DNA of 64,000 nt from Histomonas meleagridis 2922-C6/04-290x (Eukaryota > Protista > Parabasalia). How positions within the stretch are numbered: the stretch's first letter is position 1; each line of letters opens with the position of its first letter. The DNA is taken from contig JAANOX010000231.1 of NCBI GenBank assembly GCA_020184695.1, positions 267,017 through 331,016 of the forward strand. Direction: 5' to 3'. Shown in pieces: positions 1,478 to 35,176 of this stretch. The notes beneath the pieces were generated by a model, which made no database searches, was not told the origin of the DNA, and was given only the letters and a program-made list of their open reading frames with translations. The position numbers were made by a program, and so were the translations under genes.

Positions 1478-3046
1478 ATGTATTGGGGAAAAGCACAACC
1501 ATCATATACCGAACTTCTGAACTTAGTACAAACTAATCCACCAGATTATGAAGCTATTCTCGAAGATTCAGATTTGATTCCATTATTTAGTTCAGGAAAT
1601 AAAATTTTTACTTCATTCTTGCAAAACGAAACCAATGCTCGGTATATCCTTCAGCAGCTATTTTCAAATGAAAACGTCAAGATATCACAAAAAATCATGC
1701 AAATGTCAACTTCTTATTCATCACCTTTGTTAAACTACCTAATTACACACCATTCATTCTCAGAGTCATTTATCCAAAATATTGAATGTGGTGATGATGT
1801 TCGTATTGGATATTTATCTCGAATATATTCATATGCGTTTGATCTTCGTCTTGATGGAATAATAAGCTTATTCTCAAACTCTGTTCCAATTATTGTAAGT
1901 CTCCTCAAATGCATTCATACATCTTCAATTTTTAGTCTCATTGAATCTTACAATAATTCCATAAAACCTAATATGAAATGGCTCCCATTTGTTTGTCTTA
2001 AACTTATTTCCCCACCAGGCTCAAATATTCCTATACCATCTTATCTTAGCAGTTATTCCAATAAAATCGATTCAGTTTTCGATCAACTTTCCGAATACAA
2101 TTTCACAAATTCACATTATTCTAAAATGGCGCTTCTTATTCTTCATACACTTAACACAGGTAAAGAACCAAATTTCCTCAATTCTCTCAACGATGTTTTA
2201 AATGGAATTTATACACAACATAACGGCATAAAAGTTCGAAATATAATAATTGAACTCGCAACACTTATTCCAAGTGCACCTGGAATGAAAGAAATTGCTA
2301 TTGATCTTGTCAAAAAACCTGTTCCTTATGATGAAGATTCTGTACTTTCTTTAAAGCTTTTGAGTAAAATAGCTGATAAGTCATTAGAGAACATCGTTCC
2401 AGATATAATTGATAGATTCATAAATGATAAAAATAATACATTCCATGCAAAAGCTTTTTGTGACTTCGTTAGATCTGCTGTTGATGTACCAGAGTTATTG
2501 GATATTTTGGAGGAAAAATTTTTGCCAATTGCAATGGAAGTTGGAAGAAAAGAAAAATGGCGAGAAAATGCTGCATGTGTAGCATATTTCCTTGAAACAT
2601 CATCGTTAATCGGTCAACATTTAGCTAACCCAAGTGATGAATGGAATGAGTTCAACGAAACATCGCTGAAGGAATGGGGCACCCGAAACGAGGGACTTTT
2701 ACGGGGCAACCTGAAGTTTGAAAGCAATTATCTCGAATATGAAGAAGAAGAGGAAGATGATTATGAGTATGATGACATATTCTTTGAAAATGATGATGAT
2801 TGTTTTGTTGTTGTTGGAAATAATACTGAGGAAATTAATGAAGATTCAGAAGAACAAGAAAACAATGAAACAACAACAAACATTCAAAACACATCTTGCG
2901 ATGAAACAGAGCCATACGTAAAATACCTTAAACAACTAATTAACACAGGAAAATTTCAAAGCGCTCCTTTGGAATGCATCAAAAAATTCAAACAACCGTT
3001 TTGTCTATCGGCGGAGGACGTTATCCTTTTCAGTAAATCGAAATAA
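1478..3046 (+). CDS. SIT4/PP6 phosphatase-associated (SAPS-like) helical protein
   Basis: ORF 1403..3046 begins at TTG; the first ATG is 1478 (MYWG...). Helical repeat body and acidic C-terminal tract resemble the SAPS family. Confidence 0.55.
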   Translation: MYWGKAQPSYTELLNLVQTNPPDYEAILEDSDLIPLFSSGNKIFTSFLQNETNARYILQQLFSNENVKISQKIMQMSTSYSSPLLNYLITHHSFSESFIQNIECGDDVRIGYLSRIYSYAFDLRLDGIISLFSNSVPIIVSLLKCIHTSSIFSLIESYNNSIKPNMKWLPFVCLKLISPPGSNIPIPSYLSSYSNKIDSVFDQLSEYNFTNSHYSKMALLILHTLNTGKEPNFLNSLNDVLNGIYTQHNGIKVRNIIIELATLIPSAPGMKEIAIDLVKKPVPYDEDSVLSLKLLSKIADKSLENIVPDIIDRFINDKNNTFHAKAFCDFVRSAVDVPELLDILEEKFLPIAMEVGRKEKWRENAACVAYFLETSSLIGQHLANPSDEWNEFNETSLKEWGTRNEGLLRGNLKFESNYLEYEEEEEDDYEYDDIFFENDDDCFVVVGNNTEEINEDSEEQENNETTTNIQNTSCDETEPYVKYLKQLINTGKFQSAPLECIKKFKQPFCLSAEDVILFSKSK

Positions 3047-3988: not shown

Positions 3989-4020
3989 GGGGTGCCTCGT
4001 TTCAGGGGGCCCTTAGTCCA
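3989..4020 (+). repeat. Two 16-bp GC-box units (ggggtgcctcgtttca / gggggcccttagtcca)
   Basis: G-tracts start at 3989 and 4005, 16 bp apart. The units resemble those of the array at 10864-10921. Confidence 0.6.
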
Positions 4021-9054: not shown

Positions 9055-10151
9055 AAAATATTAATGAAGCTATCAGTTGACTTACCAGCGACTTTTCATA
9101 ATTGCAGAAAAAGCCGTATCGGTTATTCAATTTTTGAAAGATCCAAAAACCTGTTGTAAAACATGCCAACACAAATAATCAAATATGATTTGTATAACAT
9201 ATGATGAATTTTTTAAACTATAAACCATATAATATTAATCACTTATATATATTTCAAGTAAATATAAATCACAATGATTAAATAATCTGAATATAGCAAT
9301 ATAAATCTATTTTGGAACAAAAAACTGGACGTTCAGAACGTCATAGCTACTTTTTCAAAAGAATATTTTTTTTTGAATGTTGGACAGACGATATGATGTT
9401 TGTAAACTAATCAATCAAAATTGACAACAAACTTAGTCAAAAACAAACGATAGAATCTAACTTAGTTTTTTCACTGTTGTTGTGTTTTCGAAACAAATTA
9501 AATTAAATTTATTAATATCTCAACATTGGTGTTAAAACAATTCCTGCCTGTTGAAAGTGTTTAGCAAAAAGCCTTTAACATTGGGATTAAAGGAATTCGT
9601 TACATGAGATGAAAATTTTATTTACTAACATAGATAAGATATTCACATCATAAAGCAAAAAACATGCATGTTTCAAACGTGAATATGCACTTTACTGCAA
9701 GTAATAGAATAAATCACACAAATCATTTTCTGATGTACATGTTACAATTTAATAAACAACACTCAAACATACTACTTCATCAAAAATGACTTTTTATCAA
9801 ATGATTATCATGCATCATTTCGAATGTTATTTGATCAAACATAAATCTATGTTTCTATTCATCAATAAATTTCAAAAAATAATTTTCCAATTAAAATAAT
9901 TTGCAAATTATATATTCTTTTCCGGCAAAAAATCACCACAAATACTTAATATAATTAACAAATTAGATTTCTTTCCCAAACGATATGTAACACTTTCAAA
10001 AATATTATTTTGATGTGCATAAGTTAAGGCCATTTATCCATTCATATTTGAATTTGTACACTTATCGTTTTATTTGAGATTCTGGGGAAAATGGGGGTGC
10101 CCCGAACTCAAATTAACCTACCGTTTTCGTCACTTTTTTCAAGGACAAGAA

Positions 10152-10877
10152 ATGAACAGGAAAGACAATTCAAATAATAACTATAAAAAAGAGTACCAAG
10201 ACAACCAGTTCCCCGACTTTGACTCTAGCCGCGGCAGAGGTTCTTATGATGAAGGACTAATAAATGAATACGATAAATTTAAACAAAATAGAAGACAACG
10301 CTCAACTAGCCCTAGGGTAGGGAACATACCAAAGTCACATTCTGTGGGTCATATGCCTTCCAAAAGAAATCCTTTCTATTATGAGCCAGCGAAGGATGAT
10401 CGATCACAAACTTCAATGCCATCACCAATCCAACCTAAACATGATCCTACTCCTGAGTTCGAATTTAAACCAGAACTCCTTGAAGATCACACAGACAATC
10501 AATCAAATAAACAAACCCAAAGCACAACGCCAAAGTCATTACCTTCAGAACGTTCACAACAAATGAATACTTCATCACAATCAGGACAGCGTGGACGAAA
10601 TAATCAATACAATCAAATGAACAGAAACAGACAGGGCCAAAAGTCCCAACATGAACAACCATCACACTCTCCATCCCATCAGCAAGCAGAACCTCCAAAA
10701 GAAAACTCAAATTCGGAGAAACAAACTCCCAATAAACCATTTAATGCCTTTAACATGTCTCCACAAAAAGGTAGCCAAAGTAACATGCGCAACCACGATA
10801 ATTACCACAAAGGATACCGCGGGGGAAACAAAAAGAATTTCTATGATTACAAGAGCAACTCCAAAGGCACCCCATAA
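10152..10877 (+). CDS. Low-complexity Q/N/S/R-rich disordered protein
   Basis: ORF 10074 begins at TTG. First ATG is 10152, preceded by Inr TCACTT (10130-10135) and an ACCGTTTT box (10120). Confidence 0.7.
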   Translation: MNRKDNSNNNYKKEYQDNQFPDFDSSRGRGSYDEGLINEYDKFKQNRRQRSTSPRVGNIPKSHSVGHMPSKRNPFYYEPAKDDRSQTSMPSPIQPKHDPTPEFEFKPELLEDHTDNQSNKQTQSTTPKSLPSERSQQMNTSSQSGQRGRNNQYNQMNRNRQGQKSQHEQPSHSPSHQQAEPPKENSNSEKQTPNKPFNAFNMSPQKGSQSNMRNHDNYHKGYRGGNKKNFYDYKSNSKGTP

Positions 10878-10921
10878 ACAGAGCACCCCGTAAACGGAGT
10901 ACCCCGAAACTAGGGTGCCCC
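10864..10921 (-). repeat. Four-unit degenerate 16-bp tandem array with CCCC/GGGG tracts
   Basis: CCCC at 10870, 10886, 10902 and 10918. Minus strand reads GGGG-caccctagtttc-GGGG-tactccgtttac-GGGG-tgctctgtttat-GGGG. Confidence 0.85.
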
Positions 10922-10984
10922 GTTGCTGAAAGCAACCAAATTGATTAAAAGATTTATACATTGTATTCTTTAATTTTTTCGCGA

Positions 10985-12058
10985 CTAAAAATCTTCGAGC
11001 ATGAAGTTCTGATAGCGGTCTATTGATTGTTGTTGACTTGTTCCTTCACCAAAAGATGCAATGTGCATAAACATTGAGCTTCCAGGATGATCCTCATCAA
11101 CACTTTCGAGCATGTATTTCCATGAGCTACCATCTCCGACAGTTGGTTTGTCTGCCGTTTCGATTTGTATCTCTTGTTGATCATCTTCAGATACCTGAGG
11201 CTCAGTAACAGAGTATCTTCCGAGAATCGTCGCAATCGATGCGGTCTTCTTTAGTGTCTGCGATATTATGGAAAGGAGAATATCTTTGAGTGGCTGCGAT
11301 AATCCACGAGTTGTATCAGTTTGTGGAAAACGAGCAATAACATTTCCTTTCTCTTTTGGCCATTCCGTAGACATGTTCTTGTAACGAAGAATGTTGTTTT
11401 TGGCTTCGTTAAGTTGCATATCAAATGAACGGATTTTGTTAATAAGGCTTATGGTGTTAAGACCTTGATCAATAGCTTCACGTGCTTGCTTTTGAAGATC
11501 TTCAATGTCTAAATTCGCAGGATCTAAGTCCCCATATGTCCTTAATAAATAAAGTATCTTTTCCCTAGAAAGAACATTCGATTCTTCTTTTGTCAAACAA
11601 CCAGACCTCAAACGCCACCATGACCAAACGCTTCCGATGGCTTGAGAAATGTTCATACGCTTTGGTTGTCCATTAACATATAATCTGACATCACCAGAGC
11701 CTGCTGTTTTTGAATGAATTTGATAAAAGAAATCAGCCTGACTACTTATAGAAGCAGCACGGACTTGGAAGCCTGGCTGATGAGTGAGGTATTTTTCTAT
11801 GTAAACATTAATACCATTACTACAAAGGGTTGTAATAAATTGGTCAGTTAGTGCTTTCACTTTTGCGTTCCCAAAGTCGCATACAAAAACATGAACGAGT
11901 GGTTGACGTGGAGTAATTAAATTTGATGGACTTTGAGGATTTGTTATTGAATAATTTTTAGGTTGCTCTTGTGGACTCCTTGGGTTTGTGTTTGGAGGTC
12001 CGAAATGAAGTCCTCGAACAGGCCTTTGAACAGTGATATTAATTTGGTTTTGCTTCAT
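10985..12058 (-). CDS. Hypothetical protein
   Basis: 357-aa ATG-initiated ORF; ACCGTTTA box at 12075-12082 just upstream. Confidence 0.8.
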   Translation of the reverse strand: MKQNQINITVQRPVRGLHFGPPNTNPRSPQEQPKNYSITNPQSPSNLITPRQPLVHVFVCDFGNAKVKALTDQFITTLCSNGINVYIEKYLTHQPGFQVRAASISSQADFFYQIHSKTAGSGDVRLYVNGQPKRMNISQAIGSVWSWWRLRSGCLTKEESNVLSREKILYLLRTYGDLDPANLDIEDLQKQAREAIDQGLNTISLINKIRSFDMQLNEAKNNILRYKNMSTEWPKEKGNVIARFPQTDTTRGLSQPLKDILLSIISQTLKKTASIATILGRYSVTEPQVSEDDQQEIQIETADKPTVGDGSSWKYMLESVDEDHPGSSMFMHIASFGEGTSQQQSIDRYQNFMLEDF

Positions 12059-12241: not shown

Positions 12242-12703
12242 TTATTCATGAATCTTAGTTTCCTCAGGTTGTGTTACTTGTTGTTGTGTATCTACAAATG
12301 ATAGCATAATATCGTTCTGTTTCACGAAATTTTTGATTGAATAATTTTTACTTTCTATTGAAAGCCATTTCTTTTTTAAATCTCTTCCTGTTCTTCCAGT
12401 AGGACCAAAAACTGTATGAAAACTTCCAAGAATTTGAGCCCATTTTCCTTTTCCATATTTTTCGACACCTGCTTTTAGTGCTTCGATTTCAACAGATGAC
12501 CAACGAATTGGAACCCTTTTACCGTCAACTATTTGTCTGTTTTTTTGTTCTATCACGTGTATTACCGGTTCATTCTTATTTAATTGATATTCATTTTTCA
12601 TATAAATTGAATAGCACTTACATAAATCTTGATGTGTGAAATTTAACCTTGGTAATCTTTGTATAAGCTCATTTAAACTTTCATTTTCTGCTGTTTCCCC
12701 CAT
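12242..12703 (-). CDS. Single-Myb (telobox/TRF-like) DNA-binding protein
   Basis: RWSSVEIEALKAGVEKYGKGKWAQIL...GRTGRDLKKKW resembles TRF-type Myb domains. Confidence 0.8.
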   Translation of the reverse strand: MGETAENESLNELIQRLPRLNFTHQDLCKCYSIYMKNEYQLNKNEPVIHVIEQKNRQIVDGKRVPIRWSSVEIEALKAGVEKYGKGKWAQILGSFHTVFGPTGRTGRDLKKKWLSIESKNYSIKNFVKQNDIMLSFVDTQQQVTQPEETKIHE

Positions 12704-20090: not shown

Positions 20091-20368
20091 AAATAGCCGT
20101 CATTTCCATTCAATCCAGTTCCGGTTAGAAGGGGCACCCTGTACCACTTGGAATAATGTTAGATTTGATACAATAAAGAAAATAAAATTGTACATAAACC
20201 CTATGTGAAATATGTGATTAAGATGATATGATTTTTTTTTAAATGCATTTCCCATAAAAAACATGTTGCAATTAGATCCTATCGTCTTTTTGATTGTGTT
20301 GAATTCGAAAAAGTGCCAGATTCATCTAACGGTCTCTCTAACTGAAATTCATGGTGTGAAAACAAATC

Positions 20369-32385: not shown

Positions 32386-35176
32386 ATGTTTTTACTCTTC
32401 GCTGCTTTCTGCTTATCAGAATATTACACGATAGATGCCGCAGAGGATGCCTATGACAATGGAATCGATGGATATGTCTACGATGGAAATTATATACCAG
32501 ATGATAATCTTGAAAATGAATACAATAAAGAATATGTAGATACATATGAAGAAAATGATTATGCATATGATGGGAGATACATCCCAGATATTGTTAATGA
32601 GTATTCAGTTAATGAACCAGAAGAAAATGGATATGCATACGACGGTACATATATTCCAGAAGATGTCAACGATTATGTAATTTTAGATGAATCAGAAGAG
32701 AATGGTTATGAATATGATGGCACATACATTCCAGAAGAAAACCTGGAAAACGAAGGAATCTTCTATGAAGACTTCAAAGAGTATGTTGACACATATGAAC
32801 CAGAAGAGAACGGATACGCATACGATGGCACATATGTTCCACAATATACCAAAGAGTATGTTGATGCATATGAAGCAGAAGAAAACGGCTATGCATACGA
32901 TGGCACATACATACCAGAGCAAAACAACGAATATGAAATTTTGGATGAACCAGAAGAAAACGGCTATGCATATGATGGCACATACATTCCAGAGGAAAAC
33001 CTTGAAAACGAAGGAATCTTCTATGAAGATGGCAAAGAATATGTAAACGCATATGAAGCAGAAGAGAACGGCTATGCATATGATGGCACATATGTTCCAC
33101 AATATACCAAAGAGTATGTTGATGCATATGAACCAGAAGAGAACGGCTATGCATACGATGGAACATACATACCAGAGCAAAAACAACGAATATGAAATTT
33201 TTGGATGAACCAGAAGAAAACGGCTATGCATATGATGGCACATACATTCCAGAGGAAAACCTTGAAAACGAAGGAATCTTCTATGAAGATGGCAAAGAAT
33301 ATGTAAACGCATATGAAGCAGAAGAGAACGGCTATGCATACGATGGCACATATGTTCCAGAAGAAAACGGATACGCATATGATGGCACATACATTCCAGA
33401 AGAAAACGGCTATGCATATGATGGCACATACATTCCAGAAGAAAACGGATACGCATATGATGGCACATATGTTCCAGAAGAAAACGGCTATGCATATGAT
33501 GGCACATATGTTCCAGAAGAAAACGGATACGCATATGATGGCACATATGTTCCAGAAGAAAACGGATACGCATATGATGGCACATACATTCCAGAAGAAA
33601 ACGGCTATGCATATGATGGCACATATGTTCCAGAAGAAAACGGATACGCATATGATGGCACATACATTCCAGAAGAAAACGGCTATGCATATGATGGCAC
33701 ATACATTCCAGAAGAAAACGGATATGCATATGATGGCACATATGTTCCAGAAGAAAACGGATACGCATATGATGGCACATACATTCCAGAAGAAAACGGC
33801 TATGCATATGATGGCACATATGTTCCAGAAGAAAACGGATATGCATATGATGGCACATACATTCCAGAAGAAAACGGCTATGCATATGATGGCACATATG
33901 TTCCAGAAGAAAACGGATACGCATATGATGGCACATATGTTCCAGAAGAAAACGGCTATGCATATGATGGCACATACATTCCAGAAGAAAACGGATACGC
34001 ATATGATGGCACATATGTTCCAGAAGAAAACGGATACGCATATGATGGCACATACATTCCAGAGGAAAACCTTGAAAACGAAGGAATCTTCTATGAAGAT
34101 GGCAAAGAATATGTAAACGCATATGAAGCAGAAGAGAACGGCTATGCATACGATGGCACATACATTCCAGAGGAAAACCTTGAAAACGAAGGAATCTTCT
34201 ATGAAGATGGCAAAGAATATGTAAACGCATATGAAGCAGAAGAGAACGGCTATGCATATGATGGCACATACATTCCAGAGGAAAACCTTGAAAACGAAGG
34301 AATCTTCTATGAAGATGGCAAAGAATATGTAAACGCATATGAAGCAGAAGAGAACGGCTATGCATATGATGGCACATACATTCAGAGGAAAACCTTGAAA
34401 ACGAAGGAATCTTCTATGAAGATGGCAAAGAATATGTAAACGCATATGAAGCAGAAGAGAACGGCTATGCATATGATGGCACATACATTCCAGAGGAAAA
34501 CCTTGAAAACGAAGGAATCTTCTATGAAGATGGCAAAGAATATGTAAACGCATATGAAGCAGAAGAGAATGGCTATGCATATGATGGCACATATGTTCCA
34601 CAATATACCAAAGAGTATGTTGATGCATATGAACCAGAAGAGAACGGCTATGCATACGATGGAACATACATACCAGAGCAAAACAACGAATATGAAATTT
34701 TGGATGAACCAGAAGAAAACGGCTATGCATATGATGGCACATACATTCCAGAGGAAAACCTTGAAAACGAAGGAATCTTCTATGAAGATGGCAAAGAATA
34801 TGTAAACGCATATGAAGCAGAAGAGAACGGCTATGCATACGATGGCACATACATTCCAGAGGAAAACCTTGAAAACGAAGGAATCTTCTATGAAGACTTC
34901 AAAGAGTATGTTGACACATATGAAGCAGAAGAGAACGGATACGCATATGACGGCACGTACATTCCAGAAGAGAACGGATACGCATATGACGGCACGTACA
35001 TTCCAGATGATAACAGCGCTGAAGCTGAATACGACGACAACGGCACATATAACATTGGCGATGCGCCTTCTTATGAACAAAACTCTGATAACGAAGTTAC
35101 AGACAACAGCAATGAGCAATTTGAGTACGAAGACAATGGGATCTACGACATAGGCAATGCGCCTTCATATGAGTAA
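32386..35176 (+). CDS. Secreted acidic Tyr/Gly-rich tandem-repeat protein (~929 aa after correcting three indels)
   Basis: Signal peptide MFLLFAAFCLS; EENGYAYDGTY(I/V)P modules throughout. Versus sister repeats: +A (~33181), +T (~33200), -C (~34382), which explains the three ORFs. Confidence 0.85.
33321..34061 (+). repeat. Coding tandem array, 19 x 39 bp
   Basis: 741 nt = 19 units encoding EENGYAYDGTY(I/V)P, flanked by 108-bp (36-aa) higher-order repeats. Confidence 0.95.

Follow-up and report, generated by a model that had tools for sequence, protein, structure and literature searches.

The core promoter elements described for Trichomonas vaginalis, namely Inr, M3/M3BP, M5 and MRE, are short motifs found in the roughly 100 bp that precede the start codon, and the promoter papers on T. 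foetus and T. vaginalis deal with Inr, M3, M5 and MRE only (PMC9203502, PMC12539116). The T. vaginalis M3 consensus, [AGT][AG]C[GC]G[TC]T[TAG], lies upstream of the Inr (PMC9203502), and TAAA is regarded as the polyadenylation signal of the same species (PMC4693282). This parabasalid has very short 5' UTRs. In the compact genome of yeast, Reb1, Abf1 and Rap1 occupy short, well-defined sites at the promoters of housekeeping and ribosomal-protein genes; these general regulatory factors also have some sites at the ends of genes, and when bound there they constitute a roadblock.

For Histomonas meleagridis, the genome paper on an attenuated strain gives a GC content of 28.8% and contains no promoter analysis (PMC8529796). 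Here we describe a GC-rich palindrome, GGGGYRCCCC (the box), and a tandem array of four full or worn copies of it between two convergent genes. The array was analysed within a 64-kb stretch of H. meleagridis DNA (the window), and the genome-wide counts cover an assembly of 43,133,364 bp in 281 contigs.

The GGGGYRCCCC box among parabasalid promoter elements

The nonamer GGGTGCCCC is present in 504 copies in the genome as compared with 9 for the reversed control (56-fold), and the related pattern GGGGNNCCCC has 566 sites against 32 for CCCCNNGGGG, which bears out the original prediction that such a GC-rich motif recurs beyond chance. The two central positions read YR in about 88% of sites (among the first 50 listed, 62% are TG/CA, 16% TA and 10% CG); together with the genome counts, this defines the element as the palindrome GGGGYRCCCC. 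Sequences flanking the box are unrelated across 100 listed copies, and in a weight matrix built from 75 sites the information is confined to the 10-mer, with a weak preference for A/G after CCCC and with G in 72% and A in 21% of sites at the first box position. All in all, this AT-rich genome holds about 500-1100 copies of the box, and within the window the form GGGKRCCCC was observed 4 times against 0.04 expected. A dispersed repeat or transposon end was ruled out by the unrelated flanks and by the single-copy nature of the array region described below. Two further observations concern individual loci. A 35-base context around the box is shared at C11:770545, C21:98855, C48:30814 and C54:50265, where three copies are identical and the fourth has two mismatches, which points to a putative multicopy gene or element that carries the box. 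At C32:210598-213606, a long GC-rich ORF in the otherwise AT-rich genome holds three boxes and several near-copies in 1.4 kb.

The position of the box was assessed for 77 copies in 3-kb contexts, window included. Of these, 23 lie at most 70 bp upstream of an ATG, a zone that makes up 3.3% of the sampled DNA, which corresponds to a 9.1-fold enrichment (p 3e-16) and agrees with the positional bias anticipated for the GC box. These promoter copies occur in either orientation at a distance of 9-68 bp from the ATG, frequently in the space that two divergent genes share. The genes that they precede are largely housekeeping genes, such as those for the ribosomal proteins L19e, L17/L22, L23a and S2 (the last one in the window), a proteasome alpha subunit, an RRM protein, an HMG-box protein, clathrin light chain, syntaxin 6, MFAP1, a kinase and a nucleoside phosphorylase. 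A further 41 of the 77 boxes lie inside ORFs of at least 100 aa, and 9 lie elsewhere. Given these ORF copies, promoter binding cannot be all that there is to the box. A peptide motif as their cause was ruled out, since all six frames are used (14/7/6/6/4/4). Copies within ORFs favour the last third of the gene, where 14 of 23 boxes in complete ORFs are found at 0.64-0.92 of its length.

Within the window, the related sites that had been listed at 3989, 10094 and 20131 do exist, and a further copy lies inside a 522-aa ORF (2676..2684, minus strand), which was absent from the earlier list. The perfect box GGGGTGCCCC (10094..10103) is found in the promoter of the gene at 10152..10877, 48 bp upstream of its ATG; a CCGTT core (10121-25) and then an Inr-like TCACT (10130-34) come after it, and this promoter looks typical. 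The right flank of this box, CCCCGAAC, resembles the third unit of the array. A weaker pair of boxes, GGGGTGCCTC (3989..3998) and GGGGGCCCTT (4005..4014), lies 16 bp apart in the divergent promoter of a ribosomal protein S2/S5 gene and a pyridoxal-kinase-like gene. A single box, AGGGTGCCCC, is located on the minus strand (20131..20140) between two divergent genes, one of which is a SCAMP gene, 213 and 229 bp from their starts.

With respect to the described elements, the box resembles those of T. vaginalis in its closeness to the start codon (about 100 bp or less upstream), and Histomonas box promoters also carry M3-like and CCTTT motifs. It differs in that it is GC-rich, palindromic and 10 bp long, matches none of Inr, M3, M5 and MRE, and is also found inside ORFs. 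The original prediction did not recognise it among described parabasalid promoter motifs, and we found no description in the accessible trichomonad promoter literature either; an exact-word literature search for the box returned primers and unrelated matches only. The likeness to the yeast general regulatory factor sites concerns the class of promoter and goes without any sequence relation; moreover, ORFs are depleted of the yeast sites but often contain the Histomonas box. As regards sequence, GGGGTGCCCC fits the kappaB consensus GGGRNNYYCC letter for letter, which is a resemblance only, and on one strand it holds the CACCC known from Sp/KLF CACCC or GC boxes. The Rel-homology profile PF00554 has no match in the H. 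meleagridis genome, nor in any of 14 control genomes, and to our knowledge Rel proteins are not known in parabasalids. A palindromic 10-mer, as in the dimer sites of Rel/NF-kappaB, suggests a dimer. Since the box is non-random and positionally biased and since no description of it was found, a DNA-binding protein is a reasonable guess, and the box most likely represents the site of a putative dimeric one.

The promoter of L19e permits a comparison across sources, which comprised Histomonas, three paralogs of T. foetus and two parabasalids from metagenomes, one of them a relative with 96% identity. An M3-like AACGGTTTTGACGG and CCTTTT just upstream of the ATG are common to these four sources, and among them Histomonas alone has the box upstream of L19e. 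Conservation in related parabasalids, which the original prediction proposed to check, was not encountered in the L19e promoters examined outside Histomonas. About 94 kb of foreign parabasalid DNA contain 2 nine-mers, which is too little sequence for a density comparison. The metagenome relative is represented by the ENA contig k87_663172 (ERZ25039391), whose L19e protein is 96% identical to that of Histomonas and whose promoter motifs lie at 50-115.

A tandem array of four partly worn boxes between convergent genes

The array consists of four 16-bp units, arranged head to tail over 58 bp. Its CCCC tracts, at 10870-73, 10886-89, 10902-05 and 10918-21, follow each other in exact 16-bp steps, as the original prediction had read them, and TRF reports a tandem array of period 16 on the plus strand (10867..10910; 2.8 copies, 86% matches, score 60). 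Simulation of 100 windows that preserve the dinucleotide composition produced 0.47 arrays per window with a period of 10-30 and a score of at least 55, and the consensus GC stayed below 0.5 in every one of these arrays. The real 64-kb window contains about 7 arrays of the same size class (about 1 per 10 kb), of which the array at 10867-10910 is the sole GC-rich one, the remainder being AT-rich or coding. The simulation result thus identifies the array as a true duplication and rejects a chance alignment. Elsewhere in the window, a very large coding tandem-repeat block, with periods of 39, 78, 108 and others, was reported by TRF at 32548-35014.

The four boxes differ in how well they have been preserved. 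Unit 1 carries AAGGCACCCC (10864..10873), which matches GGGGYRCCCC at 8 of 10 positions and overlaps the final codons of the plus-strand gene, and unit 2 carries AGAGCACCCC (10880..10889), likewise at 8 of 10. Unit 3, GGAGTACCCC (10896..10905), and unit 4, AGGGTGCCCC (10912..10921), match at 9 of 10 positions, and unit 4 contains the very 9-mer that is counted above in 504 copies against 9. Genome-wide, the form of unit 3, GGAGYRCCCC, has 221 copies against 14 in the control (16-fold). The forms of unit 1 (AAGGYRCCCC, 104 against 39) and unit 2 (AGAGYRCCCC, 48 against 22) are weakly enriched, and the bare half-site HGYRCCCC, which corresponds to no unit, is no commoner than expected by chance (1191 against 1164). 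The forms of units 3 and 4 are therefore clearly enriched and motif-grade, and units 1 and 2 are worn. Across the four units there are six departures from GGGG/CCCC, all of them G-to-A changes in the left halves, and the four CCCC tracts are intact. Directly after the array follows a perfect inverted repeat, GTTGCT gaa AGCAAC (10922..10936), with 6-bp arms and a 3-nt spacer.

This arrangement is found at no other locus. The exact 16-mer unit matches the genome at two array units only; with 2 mismatches allowed there are 33 matches in total, 31 of them outside the array as compared with 11 in the control, and no second array is among them. A genome search with the 91-bp array region finds itself alone.

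The array fills the 107-bp gap between two genes that face each other. On the plus strand, a small low-complexity gene (10152..10877; 241 aa from the first ATG, no Pfam family) carries the array at its 3' end, and on the minus strand lies a convergent neighbour (10985..12058; 357 aa, no Pfam family), whose stop codon is 63 bp away from unit 4. The array is thus located 0-44 bp past the stop codon of the plus-strand gene and at least 63 bp past that of the minus-strand gene. For the two flanking proteins, look-ups for transcripts or other strains gave no match. The placement of 10-70 bp upstream of a start, typical of the box, does not apply to the array, and no gene start lies downstream of it; the array is not at a promoter, as a promoter-like reading would have it, but where two convergent genes end.

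Gene ends also account for part of the repeated sequence. The stop codon of the plus-strand gene (TAA, 10875-77) together with the following A forms TAAA (10875..10878) inside unit 1, and its duplicate lies in unit 2 (10891-10894). A duplicated stop codon plus TAAA poly(A) signal therefore accounts for the TAAAC(A/G)G half in the first two units. On the minus strand, TAAA occurs at 10972-69 and 10956-53, and the zones in which the two mRNAs are predicted to be cleaved border the array or extend into it.

According to the original prediction, each unit couples a GC box to a Myb-like half-site, and the composite, recurring every 1.5 helical turns, would be read by a DNA-binding or insulator system. 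AAAC does follow the box in units 1-3, as AAAC(A/G)G after units 1 and 2 and as AAACTAG after unit 3, and the predicted TAAACGG is present in unit 2 (10891-97), where it supplies an AACGG core; nothing similar follows unit 4. The M3 8-mer is not found in the array, as the CCGTT/AACGG core occurs in unit 2 only and its flanking bases do not fit. A small gene for a Myb-domain protein lies two genes away (12245-12703, minus strand), the weak boxes of the S2 promoter provide one other case of a pair 16 bp apart, and Myb-like cores are frequent near boxes. The last point is explained by the fact that M3 and the box are simply both promoter motifs: M3 (Myb-like) was matched in 40% of the promoters with a box and in 38% of neighbouring promoters without one, and the AACGG core in 30% and 32%, respectively, at a variable distance from the box. 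Together with the unconserved flank in the 75 sites, these figures argue against a Myb-like half-site as a fixed partner.

The proposed 16-bp phase fares no better as a general property. Pairs of GYRCCCC lie 8-28 bp apart in 39 cases against 12 in the control, and their commonest spacing is 12 bp (8 pairs), which corresponds to two boxes 2 bp apart. A spacing of 16 bp is represented by 4 pairs outside the array locus, and three consecutive equal steps are found at the array alone; around 76 other sites, second boxes matching at 8 or more of 10 positions show no peak at +-16. The genome-wide motif scan that the original prediction called for consequently supports the box, which recurs with a promoter bias, and not the 16-bp composite unit, which has no other copy. 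TAAAC, moreover, is accounted for by the stop codon and poly(A) signal, and the array is not at a promoter. The phased composite has been largely refuted by the genome-wide counts and we consider it very improbable.

A different role would follow if the four boxes formed a working cluster of binding sites, in which the promoter factor for GGGGYRCCCC is recruited in several copies, similar to the yeast general regulatory factors, and thereby maintains a nucleosome-free gap, a roadblock to read-through or an insulator. The strongly enriched forms of units 3 and 4 and the position of the array exactly between the predicted poly(A) signals of both genes are consistent with such a cluster. So is the metagenome contig k87_663172 (1.8 kb), whose one box (857-865) also lies between two convergent gene calls. 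Four other boxes are found shortly after stop codons; yet this amounts to 4 of 77 within 70 bp downstream of a stop against 3.2% expected, a 1.6-fold excess that is not significant (p 0.32). Units 1 and 2, moreover, have forms that are just 2-3-fold over control, and the genome holds such an array at no other locus. All in all, a binding cluster at this site seems doubtful.

Predicted folding of the minus strand

The array can fold because direct repeats of a palindrome are at the same time inverted repeats. In the minus-strand RNA, RNA folding predicts a hairpin of 72 nt (10855..10926) with 28 bp including 7 G.U, in which unit 4 would pair with unit 1 and unit 3 with unit 2. The outer stem of this long hairpin includes the left arm of the inverted repeat at 10922-10936. 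For the minus-strand RNA of 10855-10930 the predicted energy is -44.2 kcal/mol (z -7.5), and the structure makes up 51% of the ensemble; the plus-strand RNA reaches -21.6 kcal/mol (z -2.6), a strand difference of 22.6 kcal/mol. Folded as DNA, the minus strand yields -14.9 kcal/mol (z -3.9). The strand asymmetry results from the one-sided wear, that is, from all six G-to-A departures lying in the left halves with the CCCC tracts intact, and all 7 non-Watson-Crick pairs of the minus-strand hairpin are G.U. A G-quadruplex was considered and is not favoured: the four GGGG tracts of the minus strand have loops of 12 nt between them, the mean G4Hunter score is 0.71, and the hairpin is obtained even when the folding allows for a quadruplex.

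These values were compared with a null model in which four boxes received an equal number of transition decays placed at random. The better strand of such simulated arrays had a mean of -36.4 (sd 3.9), with means of -36 to -38, and 3.6-9.4% of them reached -44.2. Most of the modelled stability of the hairpin would therefore come automatically with tandem palindromic boxes. The strand difference of 22.6 kcal/mol, by comparison, was reached in 0.5% of the simulated decayed arrays. Such one-sided wear appears unusual when set against neutral decay and, as a single post-hoc observation, hints at a constraint that may act on one strand.

On these grounds the array could act as a minus-strand RNA hairpin, which would either help the minus-strand gene in 3'-end formation or termination, or be the precursor of a small RNA. 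Its start coincides roughly with the expected cleavage of the minus-strand mRNA, 27-46 nt past the two TAAA signals, and the strand contrast in energy, z-score and ensemble share, the exclusive use of G.U among the non-Watson-Crick pairs and the rarity of the strand difference in simulations all speak in its favour. Against it stand the largely automatic stability (p 0.04-0.09) and the post-hoc nature of the asymmetry. An Rfam search at E<=1 yielded two chance bacterial sRNA matches and no family match, a tRNA search yielded none, and the region is single-copy, so that neither a curated match nor a recurrence with compensatory changes assigns it to a structured-RNA family. We also know of no hairpin-dependent mechanism of 3'-end formation in trichomonads. 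An RNA role of the modelled hairpin is unlikely.

Origin of the array and its meaning for parabasalid transcription

We consider it probable that the array is a one-off slippage duplication of a 16-bp stretch that was seeded on one box, with the phasing and the Myb pairing as by-products. We infer that a 16-bp stretch at the stop codon and 3' flank would have been duplicated by replication slippage, so that each copy would have inherited a full or worn GGGGYRCCCC. As the duplicated stretch would have included the stop codon and TAAA, both the regular phasing and the pairing with AAACRG would be expected as by-products. Units 3 and 4 may still be occupied by the putative box-binding protein, presumably without a dedicated role.

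The comparison with short tandem repeats is consistent with such an origin. Like these, the array is arranged head to tail, decays with distance, mostly through transitions, and is confined to a single locus, and its TRF score is above chance, all of which are features of a slippage product. It differs from ordinary short tandem repeats in being GC-rich and in having a unit that contains a genome-wide cis-element. It also differs from the typical box, as it presents four phased and partly worn copies at a 3' end together with a strand-asymmetric hairpin. By our own estimate, overlaps between boxes and arrays should be few but present by chance: with about 1 short array per 10 kb and about 1000 boxes, a handful of such coincidences is to be expected. 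Two observations hint in the other direction, namely the one-sided G-to-A wear and the right flank of the 10094 box, which resembles unit 3. We also weighed the idea that the array is a purpose-built boundary, in which four phased sites and a minus-strand hairpin together end transcription between the convergent genes, and regard it as improbable.

Under the slippage duplication, the array locus itself adds little to the biology of Histomonas, other than an example of how local duplication can multiply the box and a natural four-site probe for pull-down, and the phased composite architecture should not be generalised. Should the boundary element prove true, it would give a first handle on RNA polymerase II termination in compact parabasalid genomes, and the strand-asymmetric hairpin, if it reflects true RNA biology, would bear on 3'-end formation between convergent genes. 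The GC palindrome, for its part, is one of the sharpest signals that the Histomonas sequence offers. It is a pointer to a DNA-binding protein and to a set of housekeeping promoters that have no prior description, for this poultry pathogen or its relatives, in the literature searched, and it thereby provides a usable entry point into the control of transcription in parabasalids.
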